Below the pieces are notes generated by a model. The model was not told the DNA's origin, did not search any database, and worked only from the letters and a program-made list of their open reading frames with translations. A stretch of 64,000 nucleotides of DNA from Styela clava (taxonomy: Eukaryota): the NCBI RefSeq assembly GCF_964204865.1, contig NC_135264.1, positions 10,726,001 to 10,790,000 on the forward strand, written 5' to 3'. Both the position numbers and the translations under genes were made by a program. Below, in pieces: positions 8,997 to 41,160 of the stretch (position 1 is the first letter of the stretch; each line of letters starts with the position of its first letter).

Positions 8997-9044
8997 CCTA
9001 AATTCGTTCGATAAATGAATGAATACAGAATCGATAATCTAATC

Positions 9045-12633: not shown

Positions 12634-12681
12634 CCTAAATTCGTTCGATAAATGAATGAATACAGAATCGATAATCTAATC

Positions 12682-15418: not shown

Positions 15419-16291
15419 CTAACCGCTATCCTGTGAAACAGCAGGTGCTGTAGATTTAGTAAACGCCATTGTCGGATAGGTGTATGTTAAAATGAACTTA
15501 ATATCCTGGTCAGGAATGTCTTCCATTTCTAATATTCTTTTAACGCTATTTCCCAATTCGCACATCGGCGCTTTCTCCTTATCAAACGCTAGCTTCAAAT
15601 ATTCGAGATATTTGGATGATGTCTTGAAAAGGTCTTTATACTGCTTCAATGAAAATTCCAAGTCAACTCCAAGGCCTTTTATCCTCTCTTTGGTGTCAGT
15701 TTTCAGCCTATCGAATATGCTATCGTAATTTTCAAATGAATGAAAAGAAGCATTCGAAGATTTGATTGTTCGTAAGAATTGTTTTTCAGCCTCTATGATA
15801 CTGACTCGTTTGCTTTGCGGTTCGTTTATTTTTCTGATAAAAGATGGACAGTAGCCGTATATTACGCAACATCCTCTTGGTTTTAAGACTCGATAACATT
15901 CAGTTTCAAATGTTGTCAGATCAAGCCAGTGTATTGCCATAGCACATGTAACAAGATCTACACTTTCATCTTCAACAGGAAAGAAATTGTCACGTACAAG
16001 ACGAAATTCCACATTTTTGTTAGGGTTGTGCTCGTTTGCATGTTTTATCTGAGAATCACTTACATCAATTCCTAATATAGATTCAAAGTAAGATGCAAAC
16101 ATGTGGGTACTTTGTCCGGCTCCACAGCCAACATCAAGCATTTTCTTCAGTCTTCCGTTCTCGGAGTTATTGTCCTTCTGTTTGTGGATGTATTTCATAA
16201 TTACTTCCGATATAAAACTGGGATACGATGGCCTATGTTGAACATAGAATTTCGTTATCTCCTCGCCATTGAAGAAATGTGAGTAAGCCAT
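15419..16291 (-). CDS. Class I SAM methyltransferase copy E, intact
   Basis: 290 aa ORF differing from copy D at only a few residues. Confidence 0.9.
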   Translation of the reverse strand: MAYSHFFNGEEITKFYVQHRPSYPSFISEVIMKYIHKQKDNNSENGRLKKMLDVGCGAGQSTHMFASYFESILGIDVSDSQIKHANEHNPNKNVEFRLVRDNFFPVEDESVDLVTCAMAIHWLDLTTFETECYRVLKPRGCCVIYGYCPSFIRKINEPQSKRVSIIEAEKQFLRTIKSSNASFHSFENYDSIFDRLKTDTKERIKGLGVDLEFSLKQYKDLFKTSSKYLEYLKLAFDKEKAPMCELGNSVKRILEMEDIPDQDIKFILTYTYPTMAFTKSTAPAVSQDSG

Positions 16292-16842
16292 CCTAAATCC
16301 GTTCGATAAATGAATAAATACAGAATCAATAATCTAATCACATCAAATATAATATATTAATAGTCGGTGACTAGTTCTGAGTACCCTCTTCATTCTTAAA
16401 TTATCAGTTTTATAGCATCAATCACTTTGGCATGACACTTAGGCCATCGTCCCTACGCTCGTAATGTACGAAGAAGGGTGCCTGCTTATACGCATATCGT
16501 TAACCAAATAACTTAGATAGGCATAACGGAAGCACGTATTTTTTCAGTATATATAAAGTTTTGTCATCGAATCCGTTAGTAAATGATCCACTGCATTAAA
16601 CAAATGTGTTTTCCATCTCCAAGTAACGAGGAGAAAGACGAGTTTTTCACATTAAAGAACAACAACAACTTTGTATACAATGGGAAAGCTTTTGTACAAT
16701 TACTGTGTTAGTAATTATTTGCTTTGGCATAAATGTTCTAAAACAAATCGCCTATTCTTGTCGGGTTCTGAATCTATAGCTATTGATATCATTGTGCCAA
16801 TTTGTAGTTCGAGCACCCTTGAATTATTATTTACATCTAATA

Positions 16843-18086
16843 CAGTGTTTCCCAACCCGAGTTCGCGGAGCGTTTGAATGAGTCCGCAACGTACCAGAAA
16901 TTCACCGCGGGCCGCAAACGTTTTAATTATCAGCCAGGTTACGATTTACGTTAGAATTTACGTAAAACATAAAGAGCAAGTTTATTCACAATAATTACTG
17001 GTTACTGAGTAGGGCTGGGCATATATTCGAATATTCAACTATTAGAATAGCAATTTACTATTCGAAAATTTGGTAACAGGTGACCCGACAGGTCACTTGC
17101 GCGTCGCTTAAAAATCAAACGATGAGATTTCACAACTCACTTGCAGATTTCCGACGAAAACACGAGTCTGCACACGCGTTTTTCTAGTAGATGTCAATGG
17201 TGGCATCCCAAATTTTCTAAATTGAAAAGCGGCAATATAAAATACTAAAAATAAAACGGAGAACACCATAAGTTCTGTTTTATGATGGTCCGCGAGCGAT
17301 CAAAAACGCTTTTTTAGACATTGCAAATCGTAAAATTTCGGGTGCTACCGCAGTATGCGCACCAAGACATTTCCCCTAGGATTCTTTGCTTTCCTGATTC
17401 CACATTGGTACGAACAGTAGTGCCGTAGGTGTTGTACGAACAGCTCAGATTTGTCGAATTCACAAAAATACGAATCAAAACAAAATATAATCGGACACTT
17501 GTCCACTGATTGTCATGATATTTTCTGAGTAGTATTGCTTTTATTTCGTCAACACAGCCGCAGATTAAAAATAATCACAATTAAATTAATAATAAAGCAA
17601 GGCGATGGATATGTATTTTTGATTTACTAAAACAGTATACTTTAAAAATATATTTTTATAAGTACTAAGTCAAGTTGTACTTTCTGAAAATTTATAGCAG
17701 ATGGTAGGATTTTTGTAACGGCGATAACAAATTCGCAAGATCGCAAAAAATATGTATCAAAACTAAATATAATCGGGCAATATATTCACACATTATTATG
17801 TTCGCAGATTGCCGTAGCATTTTAAAGAAGTAATACTTTTATCTTGTCATAAGTCGACGCAACCGCGAATTAAATTAAAATGGAAAGACATTTTAAATTA
17901 TCGTCCTTGTCATGGATTCAATATTGTGCGACAGAAAGGCCATTGTTGAAATTCGTTAAAATTCTGTTGTGTTTGGTTTTATTGCTTCTTTACACAAAGT
18001 ACGATTGAAATAAACGCAACTTGAGTCGGCAAAGATTTTCGCCGGTGAGAAAATAGTCCGCGACCAAAAAAGGTTGGGAAACGCTG
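16843..18086 (+). mobile_element. MITE family 1, copy 3 (different insertion site, more diverged)
   Basis: TIRs CAGTGTTTCCCAACC and GGTTGGGAAACGCTG; TCTAATA duplicated; the corresponding empty site is at about 8091-8110. Confidence 0.85.
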
Positions 18087-18114
18087 AATTCTAATAACAC
18101 GAGATCTGAATATC

Positions 18115-18406
18115 CGTTATCCTGTGAAACAGCAGGTTCTGTAGATTTAGTAAACGTCATTGTCGGATAGGTGTATGTTAAAATGAACTTAATATCCTGG
18201 TCAGGAATGTCTTCCATTTCCAACATTCTTTTAACGCTTTTTCCCAATTCGCGCATCGGCGCTCTCTCCTCATCCAGCCCAAGCTTCAAATATTCAGAAT
18301 ATTTGTATGTTGTCTTGAAAAGGTCTTTGTATTTTAACAATGAATATTCCAAGTTCATCTCGAGGTTTTCAATTCTCTCTTTGGTGACAGTTTTTAGTTT
18401 ATCGAA
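18115..18406 (-). pseudogene. Methyltransferase copy F, 5'-truncated fragment (C-terminal third only)
   Basis: FDKLKTVTKERIENLE...YTYPTMTFTKSTEPAVSQD matches the paralog C-termini; homology ends at an A-run near 18407; the paralog stop codon is lost. Confidence 0.85.
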
Positions 18407-20453
18407 CAAAAAAAAAAATTTGTGAAATCCGGGAACACATAGCCCGACGAGCGAAATATTTTGTTTAGAGCCGAGCTCTGCCCACTTGGTATGTCAGAGC
18501 TGCACTAACATCTTTGACTTTTTGAGCATTTCCCGTAGGTGAAGTTTTCGTTTAATAACTAAAGAAGACATTACTGTTGGTATGATACGAAACTCTTTGA
18601 GTACCCAGCATGATTTTATTGTAGTGTTAGCGTACGCCTGATTGTACTACTCTATTATCAGATCTCAATTAACAACCAGACGTGGCCCGTCATTTTGTTG
18701 AACAGTTGTTCCTTGGGTTAAAACGAAATTGAACACGTCAAATCAGCAACAATCAATGTATTTTTAACTTTTATATATTGCATTCGCTATACCGCGCTCT
18801 TGACACAGCTGTCACCAGGCGAAAAGTATTACGAAAGGCGCGATGTGGTGACACTAGAAACGTGAGTAATCCCGATGAGTTGGCAGGCGGTGTTTTCGTT
18901 AAACTTTCGCTGTCGAATTCTTCTAGATTGCGGAAATGTAATGGCACGTTTGAATAAACGTCTTATCAGCATAGAAAATTTTACAATTCATATGACCCAC
19001 TTGGCTCGATATTTGTCAATAAGGTTAACTGACTTTACTTTTCGTACCTCGCTTATCTCAGTAGTATACCGGTATCGGTACCCTGTTTTAAGTTAAAACA
19101 GTACTGAAAAACTATTTCGTCGTCGACTCCCGCTGTCATGTAAACTTTAATCCGTCTAACAGGGCGTTTATTTTCACGTATCGCCCTCATTTATGTCATT
19201 CCATTATAAAGTGATAAATACTCTTTTGACGGTGCGTGGTGCAGTTGCTTGCTTCGCAGTTTGTCTTCCGCACTCTGTGCTTCTGTGTTTTGCATTCGCC
19301 AAGAAAATACTTTCGATTCAATGAGGCGAGATTGTCATGTCACTGCATATCTATACTTCTAGGCCAAAGTGAAATTCTTGTTTATTTTTGTATTATTTAG
19401 GCATGACGTATGCGTGCCATTACACGTTTTTCTGTTTTTGCGTTTTTACACTCGCAAAATAATTCAGAGTCGTGATGTTGAGATGAAGGTATCAGTATAT
19501 GCCATATGCTGTTGTACGAAACGGAAAATAAAAACACATGAAAAAACAAAATGATTTTGCCACAGAAAAGACAGATTACCGGTACAGCATTCCAGTAGTC
19601 AGATATTACTACAGACTGCTGGACTGACAGACAGACAGACAATTTTGCAAGTAGTCTACTATATTCTGATATTACACGAGATACTGTTTGACTGAATTAC
19701 AGAATTATGGCTGTATCAGTAAAAGATATCAGTATTTATTATTTTTCTTGATTCTGATAAATGTCACAATAGCCAGCTGTGTGTTATGCTGAGGTCAAGT
19801 TAGATTAGTGTCTGTTGGTACAAAGGTCAGAAATTAGGTCCAGTATTGAATATTCAGATATTATCTGAGCTGCGCAGCCTTTTGGTAAATGTTATTGAGA
19901 GGTATTCCTGTAATAAGTAAGCTATGCAGTATCTTTTTCAACAAATGAACTTTCTCAGTGTTATGAGTCGAGAACCATTTCATTTAGATTTCTCAAGTCA
20001 GTTCAGCGCTTAAGGAGTCTTTGGTTGAATGGCAACCCCAGTTCTACTCAAGTCGAGTCGATGACTCAAGCCTCTGAACACTATAATCTTCATCCAAGTT
20101 TTGTGTCCTGATAAAGCCGAGTATCACCAGGAAAAAACAACCCTTGCAACCAAGCTTCATGAAATTGATATTTATCAAAAAGAAATATGCTCTGCAGTAA
20201 TTCCCATACTGTATATATTACAATGTTTGCTTATTACTGTATCACTAACATAATACAACTTTTCTACTTTCAGCCTATTTTTAGTCTTATACAGTACTGA
20301 ATAAATCTCTGATCTGAAATTAACATATGTAAAAAGTGAACCTAAAATTTTGGGTTCCAAAGCCTATTGTGTTGGTTTTGTGATAGTTTTTGAATCGCGT
20401 GCTGTATCTTCTATATCTGGATCAGGAGTATTTTCAAAAAGTAATCCAAAGAC

Positions 20454-23400
20454 ATGGAGTTGAATATGATAAGTGTGGTCATATTTGCTGAACATTTGAG
20501 GTGTGAATTATTTCTATTTTGATATATTATACTGTGTTTGACAGTTTAGAAGTGAATTTTACTTTGTCAAATTATATATGCTTAATTCAATAATGAGTTT
20601 TGAGATGAAGACAGTTGTTCTGCAATGAATATGAAGCTTTGCTTTAATTTGATTTATGCTAATAACGTGAAATTCATTTTCAAATTATATCACATCATTT
20701 CTATGATTTTGTATTGGAGTGTTAAGAAATTAACATTTTCCAGGAATCGGTTACTTTCTGCGAAACCCCCTCTTATTAAAAGTCGACGGCAATTGTTTCG
20801 AAGTTATCCAAATACTTTTGTTGGAAGTGAAGTTGTCGAGTGGTGGACGAAAGAATGGAGGTCTGAAATTGAAGAAAAATCAGGTGTGAATACTATTGCC
20901 ATAACATAATAGGTTCTTATCTTTAAATCTGACAAAAACTTGTTTAGCTTGAGACTGAAGCTTGAATGTTGATTCCTGGTAGAAGTTTTCAATACTTTGT
21001 TGTGCTGGAAGGAGAAACATTCCAACAAACTTGATTGTCTCAATGGAACAAATACGTAATTTGATATCGGTAACGTGCTCGTTACTATAGTATTTCTTGT
21101 CTCTTAGAAAAAAACAATAACGAAGCGACGACGTCAGAAGACGCTTTTAATAATAAAGAAGAAACAATAGATATTACAGAAGAACACATTACTCAAGTCA
21201 TGCAGACATTAGCTGATTTTGGAATTTTGCACAGTTGTAAGCATTACGACTATATTATTTTGACAAGATGGATTGGATTTATGCACGGAAGAAATTTTAA
21301 ATGATTCCCTTATTTGGAAATATAAAGATGCAGAATTGAAACTAGAAATTTTTTATGATATGATCATCATTTATTATGGTTTCAGCTGTGACATTGAAAA
21401 TATTGGATCTTTTCTAAATGTTCTTTTACATAGCATATTCATATTCTTAATGATCTTTTTTTCTAAACATATCAGATATTAGATAATGCTTATCCTTGAA
21501 AACATTTGATATGCAACATTTGCATTGTTTATCAAATTTTATCTGCTCAAGTTATTGATTTTAAATGTGCCCAGTTTCAATTATTATGCAATAGATTGTC
21601 TCAATTATTTTTTGAAAAAATATATTAATGGTTAAAAATTTTACCGATCTAAATATATGCCTAAATTTTGACATTTTTATCTAGGGTAAATAGAAAGTGT
21701 TTTTTGGTTCAATATTTATTGATTTTCACAGTGCATGGAGAAATTCCATTCAAAAATGACAGTTCTTTGTATCGATTTACCACGGACGATGGGTCAAGTT
21801 GTGGTCTGGTTGAAGCTTTAGTTAAAGGAAAACGGTTACACGAAACGTAAGTTAAACATTCCCTTTTCATGAAACAAATTTTTTGTCTAATTTGAGAAAC
21901 GAAGGATTATTCCTCGAAACTTGCCACTTTAGAATGCTACTGACATATATTAAATATACTTTAAATAAATAGAATGTAAGAGGCTCTATATTTTGGATAT
22001 ACATATAAATTAAGGTTCCATCTGTTTGAATTGAAGTCTTTATTTCGCTGTCAATTTGCACTCAATTCTGGAATTTTAGAACAACATGTCCAAACTGTGC
22101 TCTGCTCCAACGTGTGTGCGAGTATGGTGAATTTATTTCTGACCAATGCATGAGAGGATCGGACTTGATTGCTTGGACAATAGAACATGGACTTGCAACA
22201 CATAAAGACGACGCTAATCGTTTATGCAGACTTATGTTTGATCATGGAATAATTAAACCAGGTAAATTACCTTTGACTTCTGACATTTCATTTTTTGATT
22301 TGAAACAAAATTTTTTTATAGTCTTACGCATAAAGATCGGTTTTCTTTTATTTTATCTCAGTAGTCTTAGGTTTGTTTTTATCTTCTGACTTCTGTAGCG
22401 CATAAATGAATTTTGTTTGTATCAACCACTTGTTAACTAAGCTAAGCACTCTTAAACAGCTTGTCATATATGTCTATATTGTTTATAATGGTGATATGAA
22501 ATAACACATGCTAGTGTAATTACTGCGAGTACCAAATGTGTTTGACCTCATTCAGGTGTTATGGCATTGCTTAAGGCAAAGTAATTTATTTTCTAAATTC
22601 GTTGTTCAAAATATTATTGCATAACATGTGAAAGTGTTTTTCTCGCTCACACTTGAAGCTCTTAAGTATAATTTATAATATAATGGGGATTTTTATTATG
22701 TTGTTTATGGATGTTGAATAACCCAATTATATGGATCATATTCATGTTTATTTTTTAAATTTTGACAATAGCTCAGTGATTGTTTACCACCTGAATTATA
22801 TAAAGTAAATCTCTTCTGATTGCTGGCACAATGTGCCACCGATCAGTGCCTGGCGTTTGCTGTGATTTATTTTTAAGTAAATATACATAGCGGAAGATTA
22901 TGGCGACTTTACTCAAATCAAATATTTGACTTTTTATGAGATGTGATGCAACTATGTGTCCATTGTGTTTGGTAGTTATGTGGTTATGTTGTAAATTATA
23001 CAATGTGTTATCTGAACGCTTACATTGCATGGATGTTATCTATGATGTGTAAGCATGGCAGGCACTATGGTGACTGCTGAACTATATCGTGTTTGATTGA
23101 TGTTTTGAGATTTTTACAAAAATTTGCAATGCAACCCTATATCATCATATAATATAAAAATATCCATGAATTCGGAAAATACAAAAATGGTGGACATTCA
23201 TTCGAATTCAGTTTTCTAGCATATTTTATTTCATTTTCATTTAACAATTCACTATGAGCGCAATTTTTTCAACCCAGGAAAGGAATGTAATATTGCTTTG
23301 ATTATTATAATAAAAAGAAAATTGTAAACCTAAATGTTATTTTTTTTAATTTACCCTATTTTTTAAGTGAAATACCAAACCATTATACATTACATCTTGA

Positions 23401-26400
23401 TACTGGAATCACGAAAATAAGCCAATTTTACTGAAACAATATTAATAATAAATTTCAATCTAAATTTTCATATTAAACTCTGTTATTTATAGCAATTTCA
23501 TTGATTTCCTGTTTTAGTTTATGTCATGCCATGCATGTTACGGAAGTAACTCCAACCTGCGAACACTAATACTAAAATTACATTAATAAAAGTTTATTTA
23601 TGGAATGTCTTCCTTGTGGGAGGGATATTATTAAGCATAAATTCTATAAGACCAAAGGGTATGGGTAGAAGGAGATTTTCTGGTTCAAAGTTCTCACTAA
23701 GCCTGTCTTTCCTATGTTATGGTCTGTGCAACACAGCCCCAATTATTTCGTCCTACAATCAAAAATTTTTTATCATTCCTTCATATTATCATAATCCAAA
23801 TTGTAGGTGTGCGTGCCATGGAAGGTATGAATTATTTGTAAAAATTTTTCTTCAAATTCAGTTTTCCATCTTTTCTTTACAAAACGTCTATATGGCTAAT
23901 GTACTATGAATGGAAGTTATATAACAAAATCCAATGACGCATGTCAGATCCTATTTTATATGTTTTACTGCATATAAATAGTAATATTTTAATTATTAAT
24001 CGATGGGGCGTTTCATGGGAGGGTTCATTTTGATGTTCTAAAGCATTTTTTCAGTTTTTACCAATAATGAATTATATGAGTAATGATGAAGTTTCGATAT
24101 TTGATAACACTGGGAAAAGAATTGTGTCCACTGATTTTCCCTACTCCGCCATTACTGAGTTTCTCTTATTACAAAGCTTCGGGGGATAGAATTGGTAATA
24201 TGCAGCTGAGTGGTGAATTTCCCTATAATACTTCACCATTTTCTCCAATACTGAATTTTAGCCATGTTAGTTATTGAGAATCGCTATCCGTTTTATTTAA
24301 TAACATTATACTACACGCAAGTCGTTGACGTGTTGCGTGGCTATTTTGCGTGATAACGCATGCTCAATTATGGTAATGTAACATCATACGTAACACTGTT
24401 GTCTGCGTCACGCAGTCGTGTCGTCTGCTACTTATACAAGTGAGACATTTATAATTTTGCATGACTATGATGTGACTGTAACGAACGATTGACCCCGATG
24501 TGAGTTCGTGTATTTTGCTGCCGTGGCCGCTTTTGTTGTCATTATACTGCCACGTCCAAAATTTGATTATTATGGTTCCTCATAAAATGAAGACGAGCGA
24601 TGGGTCTTGGATAAAATATAAATTTTTTTAACTGATAGCCTGATAGGACAAGTATTTTTAAACAACTCTATCTGGCCATCCGGATGTTTAATTTACGTAA
24701 GAAAAAGGCATTCAATTAAAGGTGATATATCTGGGCTTGGCTGAACATGGCGTTAAACGGTGTATGACTAATCGGCCATTTGCAATATGACGTCATATGT
24801 CGTTCTCAAGAATATTAGCGTAACGTCTGGTCGAGTGAAAGGTGTGAGGTATACCGTATAAAAGGTATACCGTATTTCACAGATAGATATGAGGACCAAG
24901 ACAGCTCTGTCTATGCTCATTTGCTGATTTGGGTTTCAATCAAGTTTCGTTTGGTCTATATTTAGATTTCTTTACACGCGAAGTCTTGCGATTATATTTT
25001 TTCATATCAATCAATAGCATGTCGCGTTTCCGCTTCCTACTAAAATCGGGTCAAAGTTTAATATCGTTATTAAGTAAGAATTGCCATGTCATGCATGATT
25101 CAATACCACACATAATTCTTATCCCATAGTCGGCGAAAGAATACGTAAACTCAAAAATTTTTTCCATTTTTTAAAACAAGACTGTTTTGTACTGTATATA
25201 TAAGAAGATTAGGTTATAAAACAATTGTGAAAAGCTCAATTTTAAAGTGCTTGAACTGTGGATCAGTCATAAACACAATCAGGTTGGCACCACTTGGCAC
25301 TAAAAAGTTCATCAGCTTAAATTTCGACGTTTCGCTGCAACGCAAACGAAAGATCATAAATTGGCGTGGTTAATTTTACATAATTGTACATAATAAAGCG
25401 ATGGAACTACCTATTATAAATCAGTGTTAATCATTATAAGAATATTAAGCCAACAAATTTGTTTTTTTTTTAATTCCACTTGATAGACGAGACAAAAGTG
25501 GATGACTTGGTCAACCAATTTGTTACTTATTACCACAGAAAATGTTTGTGAGAATAACATAGTACTTGTAATTCTGTTTTACTTGTTTTTCACGGATTAC
25601 AAATTTAACTTACACTTTAATAATAATTGTTTAAAATTTGTTTTGACGGCGTTGGACTACTCGCTCGTAATGCACCTCTAAGTGCCTTATTGAGATTGCA
25701 AATATAATCCCAAAAGACTAATATTTATGTTTACAGTGTGTCTAATATTTTATGGTCCTAATGATATTCCAGAGGTATTAAAATTTTTTGATTTTATCAA
25801 CGTGCCCTTAAATTTGTCGAAAGATAGTGATTCCAATTTTGGAAAAATGTGCTTGTTTGTAGCCTTATTCAAAGCAAAAATTTGCACACCTAAAAATAAA
25901 TAGCATGAATTTAAATGAAATATTTTTTCATGTCGGATTTGATGTTTTTGTAACTTCGCCTTGTGTTCCCAATTCAAAAAATATGTTTATTTATACGCGA
26001 CGCTCGACTGTGTACCGATCGGTGTGGTGAATGTATTTTAGTATTACAATGGTCTGTGCTCCATTTGCGAAATTTGTTTTGACGGCAATCTGTCCCGTGT
26101 CATATTCCAGTTTCAGACCTCAATGACCTAACCCTAATCTGTTATTATAACAGACATTTCCGTAACTATAGAGTATCTATGATTCTATGGGAATGGATAC
26201 ACAAATCGAATCGAGTTTCGATAAAGATTGTGTGTGTTGCATTGTGAAATACACTTTGATCATAACATACAACAAAAACAAAGTGTGAAATGGGATTTGG
26301 AAATGATTTTGTTGTTTTTTACTGAGTGCCTTGTCTCTAACAAAATTGTTAAGGTCATTTTCATTTGAGCGTTTAAATGGCGCCCAACAAACGTAGCACA

Positions 26401-29400
26401 GACCGTTCTTTTTATATCGCTCATTATCCTTTGAAGTTGCTCATTTTCGTTAAATATATGGACATTTCAGAAAAGTGAATATTCTTTGTAATATACTATG
26501 TCATCTGGTCTTAAATCAATCGAAGAAACCATTTTTCTACTTCATACTTTATCTTATTTTATACTTCATTTGGCGCTGGCCAGGTAATGGTGAACTACCT
26601 ACCACCGCGATCTATGCGTTCCCATTGCCTGTAACTCCATATTTACTTGTGGTGAACATTACAGCGTTTGAGTGATGTTGTTACTCATAATTGCAAACAC
26701 AATTAATAACACTAAACAAACGAGGCGGTTGAACCAAGGTGAAAATGCCTCCATTTTTCCCCATCGATATGTCACGTCGCCAAGAAGATTACTCTTTTTA
26801 TTAGGATATCAGACTATATTTGCGAATCAATAAGTCGACCACGCCCTCGAAACGCCTCCATTTTTGTCGACAATGCCGCCTTCCCGTCGTCCTTATTTAG
26901 GCGCGAAATGGGGTTATCAAAATTAGCTTGTACGCTTTCAAGTGTTGCGCGTCTAAAAGCGTTGTCGATTATGATTGAAATGCCATCTCGATAGTACATA
27001 TATCGATTGGTGTACCGTTTTGTAATGAAAAAGAACCCCAAATGGTGAGATGCATTTCAGTCATCATGATTTGTACAACGGCTTTCCCAAATCGAGTTCC
27101 AAATATTTGTTACATCTTGTTCGTCATTGCAATAAATTTTAGATGCATGCCATTTTAGAAATCTCTTTATGATATACTTTTTTAATTATGATGCGTTTCT
27201 ATTTTATCACCATTCCGTTCAACTATTTCTACGCGGACATTCCCCGCAATCAATTATTATAAATGATGTCATATTTATGCCCTTTCTCCTTAAGTTTATA
27301 TATCACTCACTTACTAACGTTCATCATTATCTTGTATAAATTTACAATTTGAATAATATTGATTAATAGCTTGTGCTGTCGTACCGGCTCACGGGTACGT
27401 TAATCTATTTTCACTGGTGTAAAGATTAGGTACGGCCAGCTTCCAATACCAGCTTGTAGCGAGGGCTTATGCAAATCATTCAACCTAGTTAAGGTCACTT
27501 GGCGATTTCAGGTCATGTTATCATCATTTATTTTTTTTATTATATCTCACGACTTGTATATGCGTGAATAGTGTAATTTCGTGTCGTAGTCTTAAAGTCT
27601 TTTGATATTTTTAACGGCTAAACCATGGGTTATAATGTAGCACTCCGGATGCGCAAAAATCGAAATGTATTGTGCAAAAAAAACTGTAATTTAGGTTATC
27701 CACACGTGAATATATGTGATCTTGATAACAATATCTTTATATTCACATACCAACTTATTCTATCTCATAGTAGCCCAAAAACGCTACCACTCTCAAAGGA
27801 AAAAAGCCTTCCGAATGATGCGCCGAGTCATATCCTGTTGTTTTTTTTCAACATGTTTGGCTATCACCAAAGTGAATAGTCACTTTGGAAATCACTATCT
27901 AATGATCGAAGGGAAGCATACTTTTAACCCTGTTACTTTCATCTTTCAAATGTTGTGCTATATTGTACTATTTAGAATTGTGAATTGTGAATTGTTAAAG
28001 AATCAATAAGTTGAAAGTTTTCCATAAAGTAGGTTTCGTTTTTCAAAAATACATCATTTTCTATGACATCGGTTAGTGGCGTAGTATGCTCTGACGATAA
28101 CAGCTGCGGGTCATACACATTAAAGCGGGGATTTCTACAATTTAATAAATAGCCTTTTGATTTGCATGTAAATGATTCCCCGCTCAACATATGCCTACGT
28201 TACGACGTCATTGTCTTGTAAGATATTTTTGAATATGATGGCCAACCTCAGCGTATCAATCGAATCATAAGTATTATGGTCACATTCCCCAAGGTAATGC
28301 CATTGGCACTGAAACTTAGTACACTGAGCCATAATAGTAATTTGACCACGCCTATACCGGATTTGTTCCATATGGACTTTCGGAATATGGCATCGCCCCA
28401 AATTTGCTTCGATTCTAAGGTTATACATACTTTATTTTGAGGTAGGCCTATTAAACATGAATATATTGGTAGCAAATCGAGCAATATCTTCAATTTTACG
28501 GGAATTTTGGGTTCTACTTGTTCTATTCCTAATACTACACTTCTACTTATTTATTTCTTTTTTAATGTGGGAGGTTTTTTGTTTCGCCCAGTACAAGATT
28601 TGCTTCTCCTGTTTTGATATTGTTTACGACTATGAAGACTCCTAAAAGTTCTCCTCGGACTATCAGCTTATTTGTTTTCATTTTGTCATTTTGCTTTTCC
28701 ACTTGACAAATGGTATTATTACGCATAAATTCAAGGCAACTGTTCTATTTTTTTTAAAAAGTATTCCTAGGGTCAAGAAAACCCGTATTTGTTTTGTTAT
28801 GTTGCGAAGACCAGACGGCTACGTGAAGGAATGTAAAAATTATAAGCTCCGTTATTTTGCAAATGCCTCATATGCCGCAATGAACAATTTATACTTATTT
28901 GCAAATCACTTCACGGGCCGTTAAGAAGAGACGGTGATTCATATTAGTAATGTAGGCTGCAGACAAATTTGTAAATTGTTTTTAATGTACAAGTAATTAT
29001 GATAACCTTGCCAAGCGCAATTCACTACAAAACACGAGTCGCTGATAGCCATGTTAATATATTTTCAATTTTCTCTTTCGCTACGAATTTATTAGATTAT
29101 TCGGACCTCGCAACAATTGCTGTGACATTCCATTTGTTTTGGAATTGTTTTTCATAGCGATGCTATCCACAAACATTGTTTTTTGTGCCTGAAGGTATTA
29201 TGTTCAAAGTTCAAAATGTATTGGAACTGATATACATGGCGATATGGAGACATTATACAACAGTATGCGGTAGGAAGAATTCCTGATGTCGATCCCTGCA
29301 GCCGATAAAACGGAAAATTAATTAAAAATATATTGATTTGAGAAACAAAAAATGTAAAAGTATTAAACCTGATTTGATATTACTGATTTACCAAGCCATC

Positions 29401-32400
29401 TTAAAGCGAAATTAGTTTTCAGCGTGTTCTTGTTATCACGGCAGAACGTAACCCTTTTATGATCATAGGCTTCTCTTATTTTTCTATTATCACGCCCACC
29501 TTAAATATTACCCTAATTTAGTCTCGTTGATTATTGCGTTTAGAAAATAAAATTAACCAAACAAATATCAAGCAAAAAATAGTTGTATTGAAGTTCCTAT
29601 TAATTAAAATGATATGAAGCTGCAAGGGTTACAATTGTTACCTAAAATGATATTGCTTAATATAAGTTCACGGTCAACTAATTTGGATTATGCAATCTCG
29701 GTTGCTTAACGTCAAGTTCAAGTAAGGCGAAATGCTGAAATAATACTTGAAAACGTTCGCCGTTTTTACACGCTCGAGGTGTTAGCGTGCAGACGACTTA
29801 GCCACAGATTATATACGTTCTATTCTTATATATAGTATTTATCGTAAACAAGTTATTTTTTGCAAACAATGCTTTTTTGTGTTTTTTTTTTTTGTAAAAA
29901 AAATGAAAATATCTTCTTCGATAACATCATGTTTTCGGACGATATCTTGATCGAACACTGAAGAGTTGAAATAATGTTAAAAAGCATATAGAATCCACAC
30001 TACTAAAATATTAACATTAGCTTATGGAACATGGAATGGTTGAGGTTTCATTAAATAAAATTTTGAAGAAATGGTAAATAATTGCACTAATCACGGCGTG
30101 CCTGTGCGCTCGAAGATCATCTTTAAATATTTTCAAATATAGAACTTCAATTTTCATCATCTCCGGAACCACTGCCTGATTCCTCTGAAATTGATCCATT
30201 TTCTTGGTCTGGTGGGCCGGATTCTTGATCTTCCGGACCACTTCCAGATTCTTGATCAGGAGGGATGCTTGCTTCTTCTTGGTCTCCACTCCCAGATTCC
30301 TGATCTGGTGGACCACTCCCCGATTCTTGGTCTGTGGGGCCACTACCGGATTCTTGGTCTGTGGGGCCACTACCATATTCTTGGTCTGTGGGACCACTAC
30401 CGGATTCTTGGTCCGGAAGACCACTTCGCGTTTTTTTGACTCTGGAGCCACTATAAGATTCTTGGTCTGGAGGACCACTCCCTGATTCTTGGTCTGTGGG
30501 GCCACTTCCACTTTCTTGGTCCGGCGGACCACTCCCTGATTCTTGGTCTGTGGGGCCACTTCCACTTTCTTGGTCCGGCGGACCACTCCCTGATTCTTGG
30601 TCTGTGGAACCACTTCCACTTTCTTGGTCCGGCGGACCACTCCCCGATTCTTCGTCTGTGGAGCCACTTTCTTGATCTGGTGGACCACTTCCGGATTCTT
30701 GGTCAGTTGGGCCACTCCCAGATTCTTGGTCTTCTGGATCGCTTTCAGACTCTTGGTCTGGTAGTCCGCCGTCCGATTCATCTACTTCACCGCTCCCACT
30801 GGCTTCTTGAGCTTGAGCTAGATGACATCTTTGAAGATTGTCCAAAGCGAGGAATAGCACAACACATATTGTTAATAATGACGTTATTTTCATTTTTAAG
30901 TTTATATATAATCTATATCCCTCTGAATTCGAAATTGAAAAGTTGCTGAAAGTTTTTTGACCCGACTTACGCTAATATAACCTTCCACGTACTTAAAAGG
31001 TATTGATAACTTTACTTGTCCAAGACGATAATTACGCCAACACTCTCCAAATGGACTATATTTCAATAGGTTGGAGGTTGTACATTACAATAGCGTGGCC
31101 TTTGTTGGTGGCTTTTTATCCCCCGGATTATACACCTCCCTGTGTCGGAAATTTTGGAAAGGCCGATATCGCATATATTCAATAGTTGGATAAAATACTG
31201 GTACCCGTAAGGCGTATCCGATACCTTAACGTGGTTTAAATTTTATAACGTTCCTTAAAATTTTTAACTTCTAAGAAAATTTATCAAGCTAAAAAAATAG
31301 TGACCAAAGTGTCCAGTCTGAAAACAGGTTGAAAAAGTATGAAACCACTTTTCTACATATACCCTACGCTTTCCTAAACTTTATCTCATTTTTTATTTCC
31401 CTTGATCTCCCCCTCAGTATTCCTGACAATGCCACAGATAGAAATTTCTCGATACTAGTAAATATTCATAGGAAAATGAACAGAGTACAACCGAGAATCA
31501 CGTTCTTTACTCGCTAATCGAAATCTAAATGTGATTGGACTTGCGTCAACCGTCTCTTTTTGTATTAGACAGTCTTTCTGTCATTTGCAAATTAAAATTA
31601 GATTGATCATTGATTAAGCATGATTCTTACATTGAATACACACGTATACGATTGATCAAAAATGGCCGTGCAATTTTGACTATGTAGTCCAAATATCACG
31701 ACTTTTCAAATCAATATATGCAGTTAACTTTCCCAGTAGACACGTCGTCAGCTATTGTAAAAATTACTAGAGTATCCATGTAGTAACGAGGAAAACGGAA
31801 TCAGTTGAATAGATATGTGAATTATGACATCAATATTATTAAAGAAAATTCAAAATTATATGAAAACCATTGTTTTATTTTTATATCAACGGGTTAAATG
31901 ATGTGGATTATAGCTTTTTGGGTAATTAATAGGTTTGGGGGATGATGAAACGATTAAGAACTAATGATCACGACTTGTGAAAATCAATTACCGTATTTAA
32001 TTAATCTACGTTTCAAGATGATGACGTTCTAACAGGTATGTCTGATAAGAAAGAATTGTCAATATCTTTTATGTGAATTTACTGAAAAGGATTGCACCAC
32101 ATATGTGATGTGAATTTCAACGACGGTCGTTTGAAAAAATGTGTGTGTGCGCTTGTGTTATGTGAAGCTTACCAAGAAAGATTTGACGTTATATGTTATT
32201 TTAATTTACCAAGTAACTATACACAAACTTTCACCTCGACTCGACTGCATTTCCATGAAATAAAAGTTAAAATATGTGTGTTTTTTTAAATTTGTCAGAT
32301 GTTATTATTTTTCTATATACCCAACTAACCTAAGCAATATTTATTACTGAAAAATAAAAAAATTGCAATATGGAATTTATCTCATAGTGTGAGCGTTAAT

Positions 32401-35400
32401 TGGTGGTCCACCTGAATGGTACGTATATTATCATCCCTCGTCAAGATTTTTATTACCCATATTTCTTGTGGAGTTTTGTCATAGTTATTCGATAAAGCTC
32501 TATACTTTGATTGTTCACAATCCATCATTGGGACATATACTGTTAATCTCGAATTCCGATTCCCGAATTCGCCATTGATTTCTTTTTGGCGTGTGTGAAT
32601 CAATTTTCCCAATTTCCTCAACTTTTACCTTATTTCCTCGTGGTGGTTTCAAATTTTTTTTCATATCATGTTACATGATTGAAGCGAACTTTTTCCTGTA
32701 TTTTTTTTGTTAAATTTACGCTATCGTGGCACCACGATTTGCTATTTTGTTTGCGAGCATTCCATGTTTTATGATCGCGATATACTTGGATCACGATTAT
32801 CCTGATTTTTTTTTAATTTTACAACTTGATCATGATGACAAATTCTTCTCTTTTTATTTTAGTATATTGTGAATGTATTTAATATAAGTGACTTTCAAAA
32901 TGCTGCGTTCGGAAGACTGTCCCGATATTTGAAGAAAATGTACGCCTTAAAAAAAACAAATTTTTGTCTAGTGTAGTCCATCTATTGAACCGAACAATGC
33001 GAATAAACTATCTTCACCACATCTCCAAAGCCCTATTCGGCACTGTGCGCTGGTAAAGTCAACCTGTACCTATCTTCAAAATCGAATGAACACTCGGCTT
33101 AGTAACGGTTGAGGACTTATCTGGAATATGCAATGGCTTGCCATCAGCAATTGTTCCACATGGGCGAGTCAAAATTGTCTCTCGAAAGGATTTGGACTTC
33201 AATATAAATCTATATCTCCATAATCTTCCACAGTCGATCTATGAATGATAACAAATCAGAAGAATATTTACTTCTCTAACACATTTTATGCTCACTGTAA
33301 CCATGTTAATTTTACAGCTACCCATGCTCAATGTACTACGGTGCTTAGATTGACCTGGGCATTGAATTGAATTGGAGGAAATCCATTTATTTCTTCTCGG
33401 TCATTCATTTCGATTTTACTTGAATCGTTACGTCACTTTTTAAAATAAGAACTTAGTTTTGAGAATGCTCATTGCGGTTTCGTTGGCCTACTGCGCCAGG
33501 TATCGTTTTCGAACGAGTTACTCATATGTTATGCCATTAGTCTTTTGAATGATTTTGAACGCCGGGTGATTTTATATACCATGAATAAAATTTGTATCTG
33601 ATATGATGAAGATTCTTGCATTCTGATCGCCGAGTTTTGAAAGAAATTTGAGAAAAGAATGTCGACGTTTAAATTTATTAGAAATCCAAATATCAAACGC
33701 ATTTTGTAGTGACTAAATGCTTCGTTATTGATTAGCTATTTAGGCCGCCATTACGATCACAATCGAGGCCGGATATCCGAATATCAACGCCAAATGATGA
33801 CAATTGTTTTTAAACTCAAAACCTCAGTCGAAGTCGAGAAAGTATATTTAATTAGAAACTGTCCGTAATATGGCGTAATGCTATGTAATAATTTGCGTAT
33901 TGGCTTGTGTTTCACACCACTTGAATGCGACATATAAAACAAATATTTGTCGAGATCTTCCGCGGAGGCAGCTTTGAGTATGAAGGCTATTACCCATTAT
34001 TTTATAGCTTTGATGGTGTAATCTTGGTTTCTCGTCTTTCGAAATGAATATTTTTTTTGAATATCTCGTTTTAGCATATTTCATGTATGATAACTGGTCG
34101 TCCAAAACTGACTTTTGTCAGTTATTTTCATTTAAAGAGTATAACGATCAAAAAATCGTATTGTTTCAATATTACTTGAAATTACAAAATTTGTTGAAGC
34201 GCACATATTACAGTTTTTCTGGTGGTCAAATCGGTAATAAACATTAAAAGTGAAATTCTTGTGCGTGAAAGCGGATAATTTGCATACTATATGATCCGCT
34301 TTCTGTGTCATGCACCGTACTTATTGGACGCGAAATGGACCTTTGGATCGTTTTTTTATTATGTTGTTCTTGTTGGTATTTTTACTCATAAATCGCATCC
34401 ATAATTCCGTTGTATTTTTATCAGATATAACCCGCGCATGACATTTCGATTTTGCACCGTTCAATTATTTGCAAGAAATTTTATCCCTGACTAACCTTCT
34501 ATGTAACTGACAGCAAATTTGGCCCAACAATCGATCATACTAGGAACATATAAGAATCTGCACACTTTTGTGAAGTGGTGATTTCCGAACGGCGGTGGGT
34601 TTCTTGCATGGATGATTTGTTTTTCAACGAGAAGAATTGTTTGAGAACATTATACGTCGGAAGTGGGGACTCTTTTTGCTTTATCTTTGCGTGTAACGTA
34701 ATATGCATACCCAATGTCCCTTCTGCAAAGCTTACTAGAGTATTTGTCAACTTTTCACTTCGAAAAAAATAAGTACCGTATTTGTTTATCCAACGGTTAT
34801 CCAAATAACTAAGATACATTGTGTTTTATTAAATTGTCGAAATCTGTAATTGTGATATCCAACTGAAGTTTTTAATTATGTCTGTATTTCGAAATTACAT
34901 AAGTTCCGTTTTTGAATGGTATCTTTTCTTTTCAATTCATGGTTCAATGTTTGGCCAAAATATTTAATCAATTCACGATCATTCATTTGCCTTCAAAAAT
35001 AATCGGGTAAACATGACCAGCCAATATTGTATGAGGTTGAAAATCATTGTGTGTCATCGACTTGGAACCGGTTAGAACTGGATTTTATTTTATTTGTTTT
35101 GATGTTGAAATATATATAATGCTGGTATTGTAGATCTCAGACGTTTGCGTGGCGCGTACCAGTGAAGCATGAAACGCGTGACATAATAACAATGGTCTTG
35201 TAAAGTCGCGAGCAACGTTTGTTTTTCGTTCGTCTGCGGACTCGATTTCTCACAATGCCTTTGAGGTATAAAATTGCAATCAAGCGTAAAGCACATGGCT
35301 GTTATTGTAAATGAACTCTAGGACGTTCAATATTGTCGATTTTCACAGGCTATATTTAGCGCCCCTTTTTCTTCGCGAAATAAAACAAAAACCCGTCGAT

Positions 35401-38400
35401 AACATATAATTTCAGCAAATTAGGCGCCACGGAAAGGCCAAATTGACGCCCTTAATTTGTGACGCGAAACAAACCGCATTTTAACAGTGTTTACTATAGA
35501 GATTTCATAGTCGTTTTCGATCGCCTCAAAAACATACCGTACGGTACCGGTGTCTTCAAATATGTGCGTCGTAGACTACTGAAACAATTCGAGTAGCTAG
35601 GGAAACAGTTCCGGCATCGTGTATTAAATGGGTTTGGCCGTTCGGTTTTATTTATGACCCACACCTGACAGTCTTAACATGAGCACGCCCTTTGTTGAAA
35701 TTTCGATGGTATTCACAACACTTTCCCGCCATTTTCGATGAAAAGTATCGGATAATGTCCCGTGTCGAATTACAACTTATTTTGTGATCTCTCGTATCAT
35801 CTGACCGATATGATCAGAAGCTTAATTCATTTAACGATACCAGGTATGGACTGGTTTGCGACTGCATGCCTGATATGTGGGCCTACCTTGATTTTATATA
35901 ACGAGGATAAATAAATAAGATCTTACGTAATTCTTTCGAGAGGTCATTTTGGCGGTTTGGAATGTTGCTTGACCTGATATGTCGTTGTGTAGTTTCTCAA
36001 CTGTAAAATACTTTCGGTTCAGAGTGGGCGCGGTTTCACTCTTTGCATTTTATATCATTATAAATTTTTTTCTCAGGCCAATTATACAAATTCAAAGTGC
36101 TAACTACGTAATTGGCTTGGCATTTATTTTCGATCATACTATTATAATTTGATATAAATAAACATGAATACGTGGGCGTTTTTTGGGCGTTGTATTTTTC
36201 ATATTCTTTGTATAAATAATGAGAAAAAAATGGTTTGTTGTATGATTATTCATTTTTTATTGATTTCCCTATGTTTGTTACCATCTGTTCAGCACTAGGT
36301 TAAGACTTCCCTATCCTTTCCTGTGATATTGTTATGTGTTTATAGTTGCTCTACCTAGCTTCCTGTCATATGGTGTCTGGAACTATTGAACTATTCAATT
36401 TTATTTAGTACCGGTAGTGTAGTATTGATCTAACTTCATTTAAATGATTGGTAAATCGAATAAAGTTTATTTTTTTAGTTTATTTGAATTATATTTGAAG
36501 GAAGATAAACTTGCTTTAATGAGCAAAATGAAACCAACAGTTTATTTATTACAAATAGGGAACATTATAGTGAATTTTGAATATGATATATATTCAGTAC
36601 CGGTACTTTCTTTTATTGCCCCAAAAATTTTAATCAGTCTCCGTTAAGTGGAAAGGTGTATAAGCCTATTCTTTGTTTGGACATCATATGTCAAAAGTCA
36701 GTTCGAAGTTAAACTATTTAGAATTATTTCATAAATCATGCATGCACAATCTCGAATAAAATTAATATTATGTCTATTAAATTGTTTGACAACTTTGAAA
36801 AAACCCTTCGATGTAGTTTCGTATAGGACATGATCAAAAAATTTGTGTCTTGAAAAATAAATTATTTTGTGCCCTAAAAACAATCCTCATTTGTATTTTT
36901 TTTCAGTAACTAATTCAGATATTCTGTCAACATTTTATTGCTGCCATCTATATTCATTTAAGCATATTGTTTTTCAGCCTCTAAGCAAGTTACAGAATTC
37001 ACTGATGGACGTCCTTTCTACCTCTTCGGAGTTTCTTATGGCAGTCCTCCAATGATGTTACAGACTTTTGTGTCACTTTTAAATTCATCGTTTTCAAAAC
37101 AGATCGCATCTACTAGCGCAATAGAAAATGGAGACAATAAAATTCAGCATGTTAGGTTGGTATTTTTAATGTTCAATTCTAATTTAAACCACAGCTGAGG
37201 AGCCTGTAAAAATGTAGTATCGGCTCAAAATTCAAACCCTGTAAAAAAACACTTATACTTTCGATTCCAGGTTGAAAATAAATAATTCGAGATTATCTCC
37301 AAACTCCAAGAAAACTAAATTTTGAATAAAAAAGCTTTTGTGTATGCAAGCTTTCTTTAATCATTTATGTCAGACTTCATTACCATCGAAAACCTAAAAT
37401 TCAGACTTGATTTCATACTAATATTCAATGAATCTCCCATCATATAATTCGAAGTATTACCTGTCGTTATCTAAATTATGACCTTACGAACTAGGTAACT
37501 CCCTAAGTCAACTTTGTTCACACAAAGGTATTTATTTATCTCGAATGTGGCTTTGAATTTTCTCTCATGATGATTTTCTCATTTATGAACTGTCTTGACA
37601 CTGGCATGTATCCCTAACCTTTTATTGACCTTGTTAAGAGATGAGAATGTTGGCTCGACATGCCCCGCCCTGGACACGCCATCTCTGTATTTTAATACCT
37701 TGTTACACCGCTCAGTCACTATATATATATATATATATCTGTAAATTATTAACTGCAATAGTTCATTCTTAAAATTGGTCTGAATCACGCACATTCTGAG
37801 CACTCCTTAAGAATTAACAACTCTTTTTAAGATTTCCTAAAACGTTTTTTGTTGACAAATGTCTGATAGTCCATTCCATCATTATGACGATATGGACTGA
37901 CTGTATTTCATAAATTCCAAACACAAAAGTTGTGAATTGATTGAGGTATTACGAATCTCCATCAAAAAAATATTACAACTCACATTAACATTCAATAGTA
38001 TATAACCTTCAAATTTCGGTAACTTTTCCCAAATGTTTAACAGTAACCATAACTATGTTTTGAAGGAAGTATTTGTCTGGAATTTCATTGCTAACAGTTA
38101 TCATAAGTTATCGCCATTTACATTCCTGTGGATGATGATATCATGGGACCCAATAAAATGTTCATTTTTTTTCCATTTTCAGTTCTGCAGTCTTTAATTT
38201 GCATACTGAAAGAATTAAAACTTGTTTTTATAGCTTTCCGTCTATTATTTCTATATACTAACACAAGGGAGTGGCCTATTTCTTGTTTTTTGCCATATTT
38301 TCATTCAACTGCTAGACTATGGTATTTATTCAATCCTTGACACTGACACGTGGCAATTTCAAATATGCCACACCCCACATACACCTTTTCCGACTCTTGT

Positions 38401-41160
38401 ATAATTTTGTATACATTGCCCCCTGTGTAAATGCTAATAATAGGCTATCATTAATTCTAAAAGGGTTTATTTAATATTTAACCTCAAGTTTGCTTGACAT
38501 CTGTGTACATATCAGGCTGTAAATGGATAATAGAGAAACTGGTTGTAGAGGTATGATAGCTGATAACTTTACGGCCGATAAGTGGCGATTTACAATAGTG
38601 CTTTTAATTTGTGAACAAATTATATGTTATTGATTTTTTGGTACTCCCGTAGTATGTGTACCAGGTTAGGGTTAGGCCATTATTTTATTCCGATTTTCCC
38701 TATTTTTGTTCTATCACAAGTTTAGGAACTGTCTGTGTTATCCCCCTGCCCATAGGTTTCAGTACCTTTACACAACGTAAAATAAGCGAACAAAATTAGT
38801 TACCTCGATATTGGTACACATACTTCTGGAGCATCGATGATTTTCATATGCCACTTATTCCCACTTTCTTTATTGAACGTTAATTTTTCATTTAGTTTCC
38901 AAATTTCTTGTATATTTATAGATCATGTTATTGCAGACATTCAGGGCAAAAACTGATTTATGGTCAATTTATTTGGATTGTAATTAACTGTGTTGTATTG
39001 TATTTTCAGGCAATTGAGTGGTCAGTTACTTGATCTTTCTGTACAAGATTCAAAAGGTCTCAACAAAAGACGGAAAAGTAAGTGAAATTGTGCCTTTGTA
39101 CTAAATAATCACGTTATTGAGAAATTTTGCAACGCGTTAATTGAATGCTGAAACCAAAATACTCTATGTACACATTGTGCATTGTGGCATATCATTTTGA
39201 AAATCTGATTCAAAGGTTTTCCAAATGGTCTATTATGTTTATATTCTAATAGTATATCATCCTAGAATTCTTATTTTCTATTTTATTCTTCGAATAATTT
39301 ACATTTTAAATGAATTTATTTTGTGTTCAAAGTCATGATATTTTATAAATTATATTTTATAAAATTTCAGTCAATTTGTGATTCAACTTCAAAAAAGAAA
39401 AATTTTAATATCATTTTATAGTATTCTTAAAAAATATTTTTTTGAATTACAAAAAAATATTGATCAATGCTTAAAATAAAGGAAAATTTCTTTAAATTTC
39501 AGACACGTCAAGCTCATCTATTGGATCAGATGATTCTGGGTACAATGAACATGCATTGTAAGCAATCTTATTCAATCCTACTGTAAAAATTTGTCCAAAT
39601 ATATACTAAAATTTAATTTTTTTTTTGCAATTTCAGAGTTGTATCATCGAGTACCTCAACTTCGACCTATACCTCGCTATTAAAACATGGTGGTAAAATA
39701 ACCGCAGAAGCACTAGCTCATCCAGATGCCCCTTTTACAAGAAGAGAGTTTAGGGTACGTCATCAGGAGTTATATTTATTGCTATATGTAGCATCAGATT
39801 TTGTATACATCTCGATGAATTTGCCAGAAAGCCACATCAATATTTCGAAACTTTAGAAAAAGACTTCTGAACCAGTCCATTAAATCGTTTGGATTCTTTT
39901 TGTACTTTTGTTGCATCGATTGCATACTGATTAAATAACACAAATGCATAGAGAAAGAAACAAGCTACTCCAATCAACAATGAATACATTATAATAATTT
40001 ATACAATTTCTGTGCTAACTGAGAGTCATACACAATGTATTGAATAAGTTCCTCCACTGATTGTTTTTATCTCTTCAGATTTACCCTGACGCTGTAGGAT
40101 ACGGCTTTATAATCAGAGGGTCATCACCTTGTTATGTCAAAATTGTCGACCCTGAGTCCCCTGCAGGAAAATCAGGCCTTAAGGTATGTTTTTTTTACTT
40201 TTTTATTCAAAAAACTGAAATATTTATGTTTATCTCATATGTAACTATATAAATTGTCATATTGGTTAATAGTATGTCTCAGTGGGAATAGATTTGAATT
40301 TAGAAAATTCTAAATAATTGAATTCCAATGACCTAATATCTGCCATCAACTTTTCAATCAACATAATATGCATGATTAACCATCTGTTTATGCCCTATTA
40401 ATATACTCAATCATAGTTTTTTGTGTTTATGCATGTATCTAACATCTTTGTCTTTGGAATTTACAGGCGTGGCAATTTATCACTGAAATTAATAATCGTG
40501 ATGTGACGCGGAAAAATCACACAGAAATTGAAGATTTAATATTAAACGGGCCAAAGTGTTTATTAATGACAGTGATGGTGCCTAAAAATGAATCAGATTA
40601 CTTGACATTGCAGAAACAGAATACAGTAAGTGACTTTGCATTTTTAACTGCAGTGGTTCTATAAGCTATTTTATTCTTTATATGTTTTATCTGATGCTTT
40701 GAGACAATGTAGTAGAATATTCCAGACCATGGTTTGAAATTTCTATTTGAGATTAATATTGCCATTTGAAATATTCAATATTTTAGGCTTAGAAACAATT
40801 GCCTGATAAGAGTAGGTAGCATGTATGAATACTTGCAATTGTAACTTTACTTGTATTCAGGAAAATTTTAATTGTATAATTCTTTATTACAAATTTATGA
40901 AACAAGACCCCTTCGTTTAATTAATAATAAAATTTTGAATTTTTTAGGATTTGCGGAAGTTATCTCAACCAGCTGACACGCATATTCCAAAGCCTGTGCT
41001 TTCTCATTTAAGCAGCTCACTAGGTCTTCGTCGGCAAAGCGTCCCGGTCAGCACCCGTCCGACTAACTTGCCAAGTGCGCAGCCGTGGATGAAAAAACAG
41101 CGGAAAGGTTCAGACTTTGGTGTAATACTGAACAATTCTAATCTGAAATATATTCACTGA
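20454..41160 (+). CDS. DEPTOR: DEP domain-containing mTOR-interacting protein-like (DEP-DEP-PDZ), 12 coding exons, about 502 aa
   Basis: Phase-consistent GT-AG exons: 20454-20500, 20744-20883, 21108-21236, 21732-21846, 22080-22261, 36978-37155, 39010-39077, 39503-39557, 39637-39754, 40079-40183, 40467-40625, 40948-41160. Motifs: IKSRRQLFRSYPNTFVGSEVVEW (DEP1), GSDLIAW...LMFDHGIIKP/EFTDGRPFYLF (DEP2), DSGY linker, PDAVGYGFIIRGSSPCYVKIVDPESPAGKSGLK (PDZ). Confidence 0.88.
30147..30893 (-). CDS. Secreted acidic Ser-Gly repeat protein (proteoglycan core-like), nested antisense in DEPTOR intron 5
   Basis: 248 aa ATG ORF; signal-peptide-like MKITSLLTICVVLFLAL...AQA; about 15 ESGSG motifs in 9-aa ESGSGP(T/P)DQ units; indels between units keep the frame. 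Confidence 0.8.
   Translation of the reverse strand: MKITSLLTICVVLFLALDNLQRCHLAQAQEASGSGEVDESDGGLPDQESESDPEDQESGSGPTDQESGSGPPDQESGSTDEESGSGPPDQESGSGSTDQESGSGPPDQESGSGPTDQESGSGPPDQESGSGPTDQESGSGPPDQESYSGSRVKKTRSGLPDQESGSGPTDQEYGSGPTDQESGSGPTDQESGSGPPDQESGSGDQEEASIPPDQESGSGPEDQESGPPDQENGSISEESGSGSGDDEN
30210..30760. repeat. 27-bp coding minisatellite with a 54-bp higher-order period
   Basis: Units such as TCTTGGTCTGTGGGGCCACTTCCACTT alternate with TCTTGGTCCGGCGGACCACTCCCTGAT. Confidence 0.9.
38640..38835. mobile_element. About 196-bp MITE in a DEPTOR intron
   Basis: Imperfect 24-bp TIRs GGTACTCCCGTAGTATGTGTACCA and TGGTACACATACTTCTGGAGCATC; internal GGTTAGGGTTAGG. Confidence 0.65.

Follow-up and report, generated by a model that had tools for sequence, protein, structure and literature searches.

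A probable single-exon gene nested in a DEPTOR intron of the sea squirt Styela clava, with a predicted secreted Ser-Gly repeat protein as a candidate proteoglycan core

The window analyzed here is a 64,000-nucleotide (nt) stretch of the genome of the sea squirt Styela clava (RefSeq assembly GCF_964204865.1, contig NC_135264.1, positions 10,726,001–10,790,000, forward strand), and all coordinates below are positions within it. On its minus strand, at 30147–30893, lies an intact open reading frame (ORF) in a single exon, which runs from an ATG start, with A at −3, through 248 codons (248 amino acids; aa) to a TGA stop and is the sole frame of the six without an internal stop across the 747 nt. 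An earlier note on this DNA, made from the letters alone, had claimed an intronless minus-strand ORF at this position and proposed that its product, referred to here as the repeat protein, is the core of a densely glycanated proteoglycan; the ORF is present as claimed, from ATG to TGA, and the proposed function is weighed below against its alternatives.

The surrounding gene is DEPTOR, which was searched exon by exon, without a joined gene model. Pfam DEP matches the plus-strand exon pieces 20742–20909 and 22114–22263, the second of which aligns to human DEPTOR residues 164–200 (structures), and the exon piece 40061–40180 aligns to the DEPTOR PDZ domain (residues 332–366). The 14.7-kb intron at 22262–36977 (plus strand) has GT at its start and AG at its end, and across it the frame runs on into ASKQVTEFTDGRPFYLFG, the end of the DEP domain; its GT..AG ends, the continuity of the frame and the DEP matches thus bear out the earlier placing of the ORF within an intron that splits the second DEP domain. 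The ORF sits about 8 kb into this intron, on the opposite strand. The two DEPTOR exons mapped at 36978 and 40061 are 3 kb apart.

The first 28 residues of the repeat protein, MKITSLLTICVVLFLALDNLQRCHLAQA, followed by Q29, are predicted to form a signal peptide (30810–30893, minus strand). This leader has a well-formed n/h/c layout with a hydropathy peak of 3.14 at residues 6–17 (Kyte-Doolittle, 11-residue window), and its end, AQA/Q, agrees with the −3/−1 rule, the cleavage site being judged by eye. A single-sequence AlphaFold2 model, weak evidence when taken alone, places a helix at residues 3–31 with a predicted local distance difference test score (pLDDT) of 82–93 and gives a pLDDT of about 46–56 elsewhere. 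After residue 30 every 11-residue window is at or below −0.7, which leaves the protein without a second hydrophobic or transmembrane segment; its only Cys residues, 10 and 23, are both within the leader, and a Pfam scan of the ORF (E up to 1) returned 0 families. The mature part, counted from residue 29 (220 aa), is composed chiefly of Ser (48), Gly (42), Glu (32), Asp (26), Pro (26), and Gln (21), with 9 Thr, and has a net charge of −54; it contains 38 SG dipeptides, 17 SGSG, and 15 [DE]SG.G motifs, together with one NGS sequon and two Tyr in acidic context. The hydropathy profile and the repeat units described next therefore confirm a hydrophobic leader followed by almost nothing but acidic Ser-Gly units, and the lack of a folded domain, a transmembrane segment and any Cys after the leader, as first supposed, also holds.

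From residue 46 to residue 248 (30150–30758, minus strand) the chain is built of 21 acidic units of the D[QE]E-SGSG-P(T/P) type, as established by unit alignment and Tandem Repeats Finder. Each of the 21 units opens with D[QE]E, and 16 are exactly 27 nt long; among these 16 the commonest are DQESGSGPT and DQESGSGPP, with five copies each. Tandem Repeats Finder reports a 27-nt array at 30286–30762 that is better fitted as a 54-nt array, and the middle units are near-identical 54-nt copies. One diverged double unit, DQESYSGSRVKKTRSGLP (30414–30467, minus strand), forms the sole basic island of the mature protein. It aligns without gaps to two regular units, an alignment that rules out a compensated frameshift as the origin of its RVKKTR unit and points to substitutions.

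The openness of the frame proves little by itself, because tandem units of 27 nt readily escape stop codons and the array is free of stops in a second minus-strand frame too. Coding status was therefore examined through the differences among units, with the codon-position and synonymy tests run on the regular units, 16 of the 21, each exactly 27 nt long. Minor bases among them number 16, 11, and 43 at codon positions 1, 2, and 3 of the ORF frame, and mean unit identity in this frame is higher in protein (0.82) than in DNA (0.765). The share of differing codon pairs that are synonymous is 64% in the ORF frame, 5 and 4% in the other minus-strand frames, and 4, 7, and 55% in the plus-strand frames. 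The first Ser of the unit is encoded by TCN in 11 units and by AGT in three, and is replaced by another residue in two; a switch between TCN and AGT requires two base changes, with Ser still kept. One antisense frame, at 55% synonymous, shares its wobble positions with the ORF and is not eliminated by the codon test taken by itself; it is ruled out as coding by nine stops in 747 nt and the lack of an ATG-started ORF. For the antisense frame with a single stop, unit identity is merely 0.50, and no frame besides that of the ORF is at once open and conserved. By these measures the array is coding rather than a chance-open minisatellite, with selection acting on the peptide across units, because of the third-position excess, the switches of Ser codon family, and an ATG with A at −3 and a leader that stand in frame before the array.

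Assembled contigs from sequencing runs of five studies contain this stretch, the RNA or DNA nature of the runs being guessed: nine runs are small contig sets (53–79 million letters) taken to be RNA, and four large sets (316–349 million letters) behave as DNA of a 377-Mb genome. Runs X1 (56 million letters of contigs), X5 and X6, from three RNA-like studies, and the DNA-like run X11 (316 million letters) were mapped to 28300–34200 (5.9 kb, 30 bins). The contig depth of X1 is 134 at 29926–30339, 133 at 30310–30501, and 170 (169.8) at 30623–31099, so that the peaks on 29926–30339 and 30623–31099 fall on the unique flanks of the array. The X1 contig stops sharply at 31099, with a depth of about 0 from 31100 to 31257, and on the 3′ side of the ORF depth declines to about 65–80 at 29691–29875, 11–17 at 29285–29690, and 7 at 28831–29247; over most of the remaining mapped intron it is 0–4 (0–16 beside the peak), with any depth at all in 22 of the 30 bins. 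X11, in contrast, stays level at about 11 in every one of the 30 bins. X5 and X6 reach a depth of 3–10 in the region of the X1 contigs, with contigs of their own at 29785–30352 and 29634–29865. No splice joints were reported in the contigs mapped to this interval, and none of the 12 indels listed (three more are outside the list) falls inside the ORF. Among the base differences listed in other individuals (64 more over the 5.9 kb are outside the list), six are inside the ORF: D73, R151, and P160 are synonymous, and N19D, S96P, and E238A change the residue.

Coverage of this shape is that of a distinct, unspliced RNA about 1.4 kb long, extending from about 31099 to about 29700 and including all of the ORF. 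It lies wholly within the DEPTOR intron and, as judged from the coding frame, on the opposite strand; the contigs are strandless, and the minus-strand orientation of the RNA is read from that frame. The antisense transcription supposed in the earlier note is thus borne out as transcription, by an RNA-like depth of 134–170 set against a flat DNA-like run, and the antisense strand comes from the coding frame. The contigs show no joint and no loose end at their 5′ side, which speaks against trans-splicing or an upstream exon. Taking the end of the X1 contig, which is not a mapped start, as the boundary, the presumed 5′ untranslated region (UTR) would span 30894–31099 (206 nt, minus strand), and a TATAAT hexamer at 31127–31132 (minus strand), 28–33 nt upstream of the contig end, is a possible TATA box. 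The presumed 5′ leader has one short upstream ATG, at 31085, and if the transcript starts near 31099 a 9-codon upstream ORF (31059–31085, minus strand) lies within it. The contig depth of X1, X5, and X6 suggests a 3′ UTR at 29690–30146 (minus strand), with weaker coverage on to about 28831. An A/T-rich run at 29869–29909 lies in this presumed 3′ UTR, and the contigs of all runs tend to break there; it could reflect internal priming or an alternative 3′ end. Weak RNA-like contigs also overlie 32100–33900, where the ORFs include nothing notable.

Searches by protein and by DNA found the locus to be single copy in the 377-Mb genome, and the weak protein matches elsewhere in that genome (L002, L003, L005) proved to be unrelated tandem repeats and not paralogues. 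The exact repeat protein is absent from a collection of 15 billion sequences, and word searches with the whole protein, with its first 90 residues, and with residues 1–48 alone found no relative. When 1.84 billion representative sequences were searched in full with HMMER, 112 proteins scored at E up to 0.001, all of them through the repeat part; no best stretch begins before query residue 20 or extends into the hydrophobic core of the leader. The 12 of these 112 that were inspected are unrelated proteins with other repeats of 9-residue period, for example a Tudor-domain protein. Just two of the 112 combine a D+E content of at least 18% with an S+G content of at least 25%, 15 have a hydrophobic N-terminus, and none has both; the matches are treated as reflecting periodicity, not kinship. 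The gene can thus be called lineage-specific and unnamed, as had been proposed, as far as the searched databases reach, "orphan" meaning here that no called protein was detected in the sequence libraries searched, a scope that stops short of other tunicate genomes. A literature search, covering articles but not their supplementary files, found no paper describing the repeat protein or an ascidian serglycin-like core. A run labeled as a different organism (X10; organism B) holds 8% of the sampled words of 29600–31400; its source could be a related species, or the sample could be mixed.

An independent single-exon, single-copy gene nested in the long DEPTOR intron, on the opposite strand, is the best explanation of the locus. 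That the gene is real, and by its contig depth also expressed, is held with high confidence. For its product, the best single reading, held tentatively, is a small, secreted, very densely glycanated proteoglycan core. The signal peptide would lead the pre-protein into the secretory pathway and leave a mature chain of about 220 residues that is disordered and strongly polyanionic (net −54), in which about 20 Asp-Gln-Glu-Ser-Gly-Ser-Gly-Pro units would offer Ser-Gly acceptors among acidic residues. Golgi xylosyltransferase would prime many of the unit serines, glycosaminoglycan (GAG) chains would be built on them, and the product would belong to secretory granules or to an extracellular matrix, for instance the tunic. 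From the sequence we infer secretion, xylosylation, chain type, and tissue alike.

What is known of acceptor sites gives this proposal its footing. Xylose is added only to a Ser followed by Gly, usually with at least one acidic residue within eight positions (PMC2063922, in the passage cited), and this general rule holds at the 38 Ser-Gly sites of the repeat protein, twice per regular unit, with D-Q-E both before and after SGSG. For human XT1, Gly or Ala at +1 is a strict requirement and an acidic neighborhood a general preference (excerpts of PMC5992326); both unit serines have Gly at +1 and lie among acidic residues. Acidic residues on the C-terminal side of Ser-Gly drive EXTL3, and hence heparan sulfate, which repeated Ser-Gly favors too (PMC10570366, PMC4598785, as excerpted); the repeat units have both of these features, and an SGSG followed by acidic residues would favor heparan- or heparin-type chains if the sea-squirt enzymes act like the mammalian ones. 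The genome itself has a xylosyltransferase locus (Xylo_C, PF12529), at 100 and 56 bits, and an NDST-type (PF12062) locus in four exon pieces of 27–82 bits.

Several points weigh against a GAG-bearing core. The human XT1 peptide library tolerates uncharged residues at −1 and accommodates Pro at −3 and +3 (PMC5992326, same excerpts). In the repeat unit the first Ser is preceded by Glu (−1) and the second has Pro two positions on (+2), both outside these stated tolerances; priming efficiency is therefore uncertain, neither Ser being textbook for the human enzyme. Repeats rich in Ser, Thr, and Pro also fit mucin-type O-glycosylation. Three of the six listed ORF polymorphisms alter the residue, neither AATAAA nor ATTAAA occurs between the ORF stop and 29094 (about 1 kb), and searches of the protein collections found no orthologue, so that there is no between-species conservation to show function. 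The contigs, moreover, carry no RNA strand, start, end, or level, and come from runs guessed to be RNA. The imperfect fit of both unit serines to the XT1 preferences, as excerpted, also counts in favor of a somewhat unlikely alternative, in which the gene would encode a secreted polyanionic glycoprotein without GAGs, either mucin-like (O-GalNAc on Ser/Thr by Pro) or a bare acidic disordered chain, whose charge and hydration would let it work as, for instance, a lubricant, a filler of tunic or egg coat, or a cation binder. Ser, Thr, and Pro together make up 83 of the 220 mature residues, in tandem repeats with no fold, and the NGS sequon and the two Tyr in acidic context are in keeping with such a product; Thr, however, is scarce (9 of 220), with most of the remainder being Gly (42) or acidic (58), and what the units keep is Ser-Gly-Ser-Gly with the acidic triplet in front of it, not Ser/Thr at large, a pattern of GAG sites and not of mucins.

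The missing relatives and the residue-changing half of the listed polymorphisms, the near-identical 54-nt middle units, which suggest recent expansion, and the failure to find a canonical poly(A) signal would also suit a young orphan transcript, in which a minisatellite gained an ATG and a leader by chance and the repeat ORF, transcribed and perhaps also translated, would have little or no settled function. This is nevertheless unlikely, given a third-position excess and Ser codon-family switches that indicate selection on the peptide, a leader with orderly n, h, and c regions, a depth of 134–170 in one study, and presence in runs of three RNA-like studies. A role in handling minerals or metals as an acidic matrix protein is very unlikely, as is a precursor that cleavage at its one RVKKTR site would divide into two acidic halves. 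The charge of −54 and the lone basic island in the middle of the chain, where Arg stands at P1 and Lys at P4, are compatible with such readings, but a single basic site does not make a polyprotein, and no link to a mineralizing tissue was found. The units have almost none of the S-x-E secretory-kinase motifs that characterize mineral-binding phosphoproteins.

A candidate proteoglycan core of this kind may be compared with three known systems. The chondroitin-sulfate region of aggrecan consists of tandem acidic Ser-Gly units with many adjacent GAG sites, and in its tandem acidic units it resembles the repeat protein; aggrecan, however, is giant and multidomain, with globular lectin and link domains, of which the repeat protein has none. 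Serglycin, the vertebrate granule core (PF04360) and the closest of the three in design, is like the repeat protein small, with a signal peptide (a predicted one in the repeat protein), a Ser-Gly run, and no folded domain, and it carries dense heparin or chondroitin sulfate chains (PMC13494187, PMC4598785, in part). This is a likeness of design and not homology: there is no sequence relationship, the ORF having 0 Pfam families, and a search of the whole genome with PF04360 gave a best score of 17.4 bits (cut-off 30) at another locus and left the repeat-protein locus unmatched. SGSG is here set in a 9-residue acidic unit, whereas serglycin has a pure (Ser-Gly)n run, and the repeat protein is longer (248 aa) and its gene intronless. 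In Caenorhabditis elegans, CPG-1 to CPG-9 are lineage-restricted secreted cores, some of them very small, with no homologs outside close relatives according to the portion of PMC2063922 cited; they were recognized by the same features as the repeat protein, a signal peptide, here a predicted one, and Ser-Gly near acidic residues. The CPGs were proven by purification and mass spectrometry, and several have chitin-binding or lectin domains (same portion of that source), whereas the repeat protein is pure repeat and known from sequence.

At 1430–18409 on the minus strand lie tandem intronless ORFs for closely related S-adenosylmethionine-dependent methyltransferases (1430–2266, 5931–6701, 11761–12633, and 15419–16291, with shorter pieces at 8520–8996 and 17990–18409), the one that was scanned matching Methyltransf_11 at 5.8e-21. 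Downstream of the DEPTOR PDZ exon, an intact ORF of 638 aa lies on the plus strand at 45061–46977; its DUF4371 and hAT C-terminal dimerization domains mark it as a transposase of the hAT type or a gene descended from such a transposase. Two neighboring, very similar genes for M20-family (aminoacylase-like) peptidases follow at 53762–54963 and 57480–58680 (plus strand), one piece of which matches M20_dimer at 3.3e-14.

Ascidian test cells and basophil-like hemocytes store heparin together with histamine and proteases, and the core protein goes unnamed in the sections cited (PMC5487770, PMC9505265, PMC13494187). Because these reviews, as excerpted, leave the ascidian heparin core unnamed and no serglycin-family gene is detectable in the genome, there is room for the orphan protein to be the sea squirt's functional stand-in for serglycin, a core for granule heparin that would have arisen independently of the vertebrate gene; a unit of SGSG followed by acidic residues, which in the mammalian work excerpted favors heparan or heparin initiation, is a further reason to entertain the idea. 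It is decidedly doubtful all the same, and no result here ties the gene to test cells or hemocytes.

The sulfated glycans that ascidians produce include heparin and oversulfated dermatan sulfates, and the proteins carrying these chains are not named in the parts of the literature cited above. A transcribed single-copy gene with about 20 consensus-like acceptor units is a concrete and cheap candidate carrier for testing. If the repeat protein is not glycanated, the locus would be just another quickly evolving orphan repeat gene within an intron; if it is, the repeat protein would be a further case of independently arisen proteoglycan cores, as in nematodes, and would open a way into the biology of granules or the tunic in those invertebrates that are most closely related to vertebrates.

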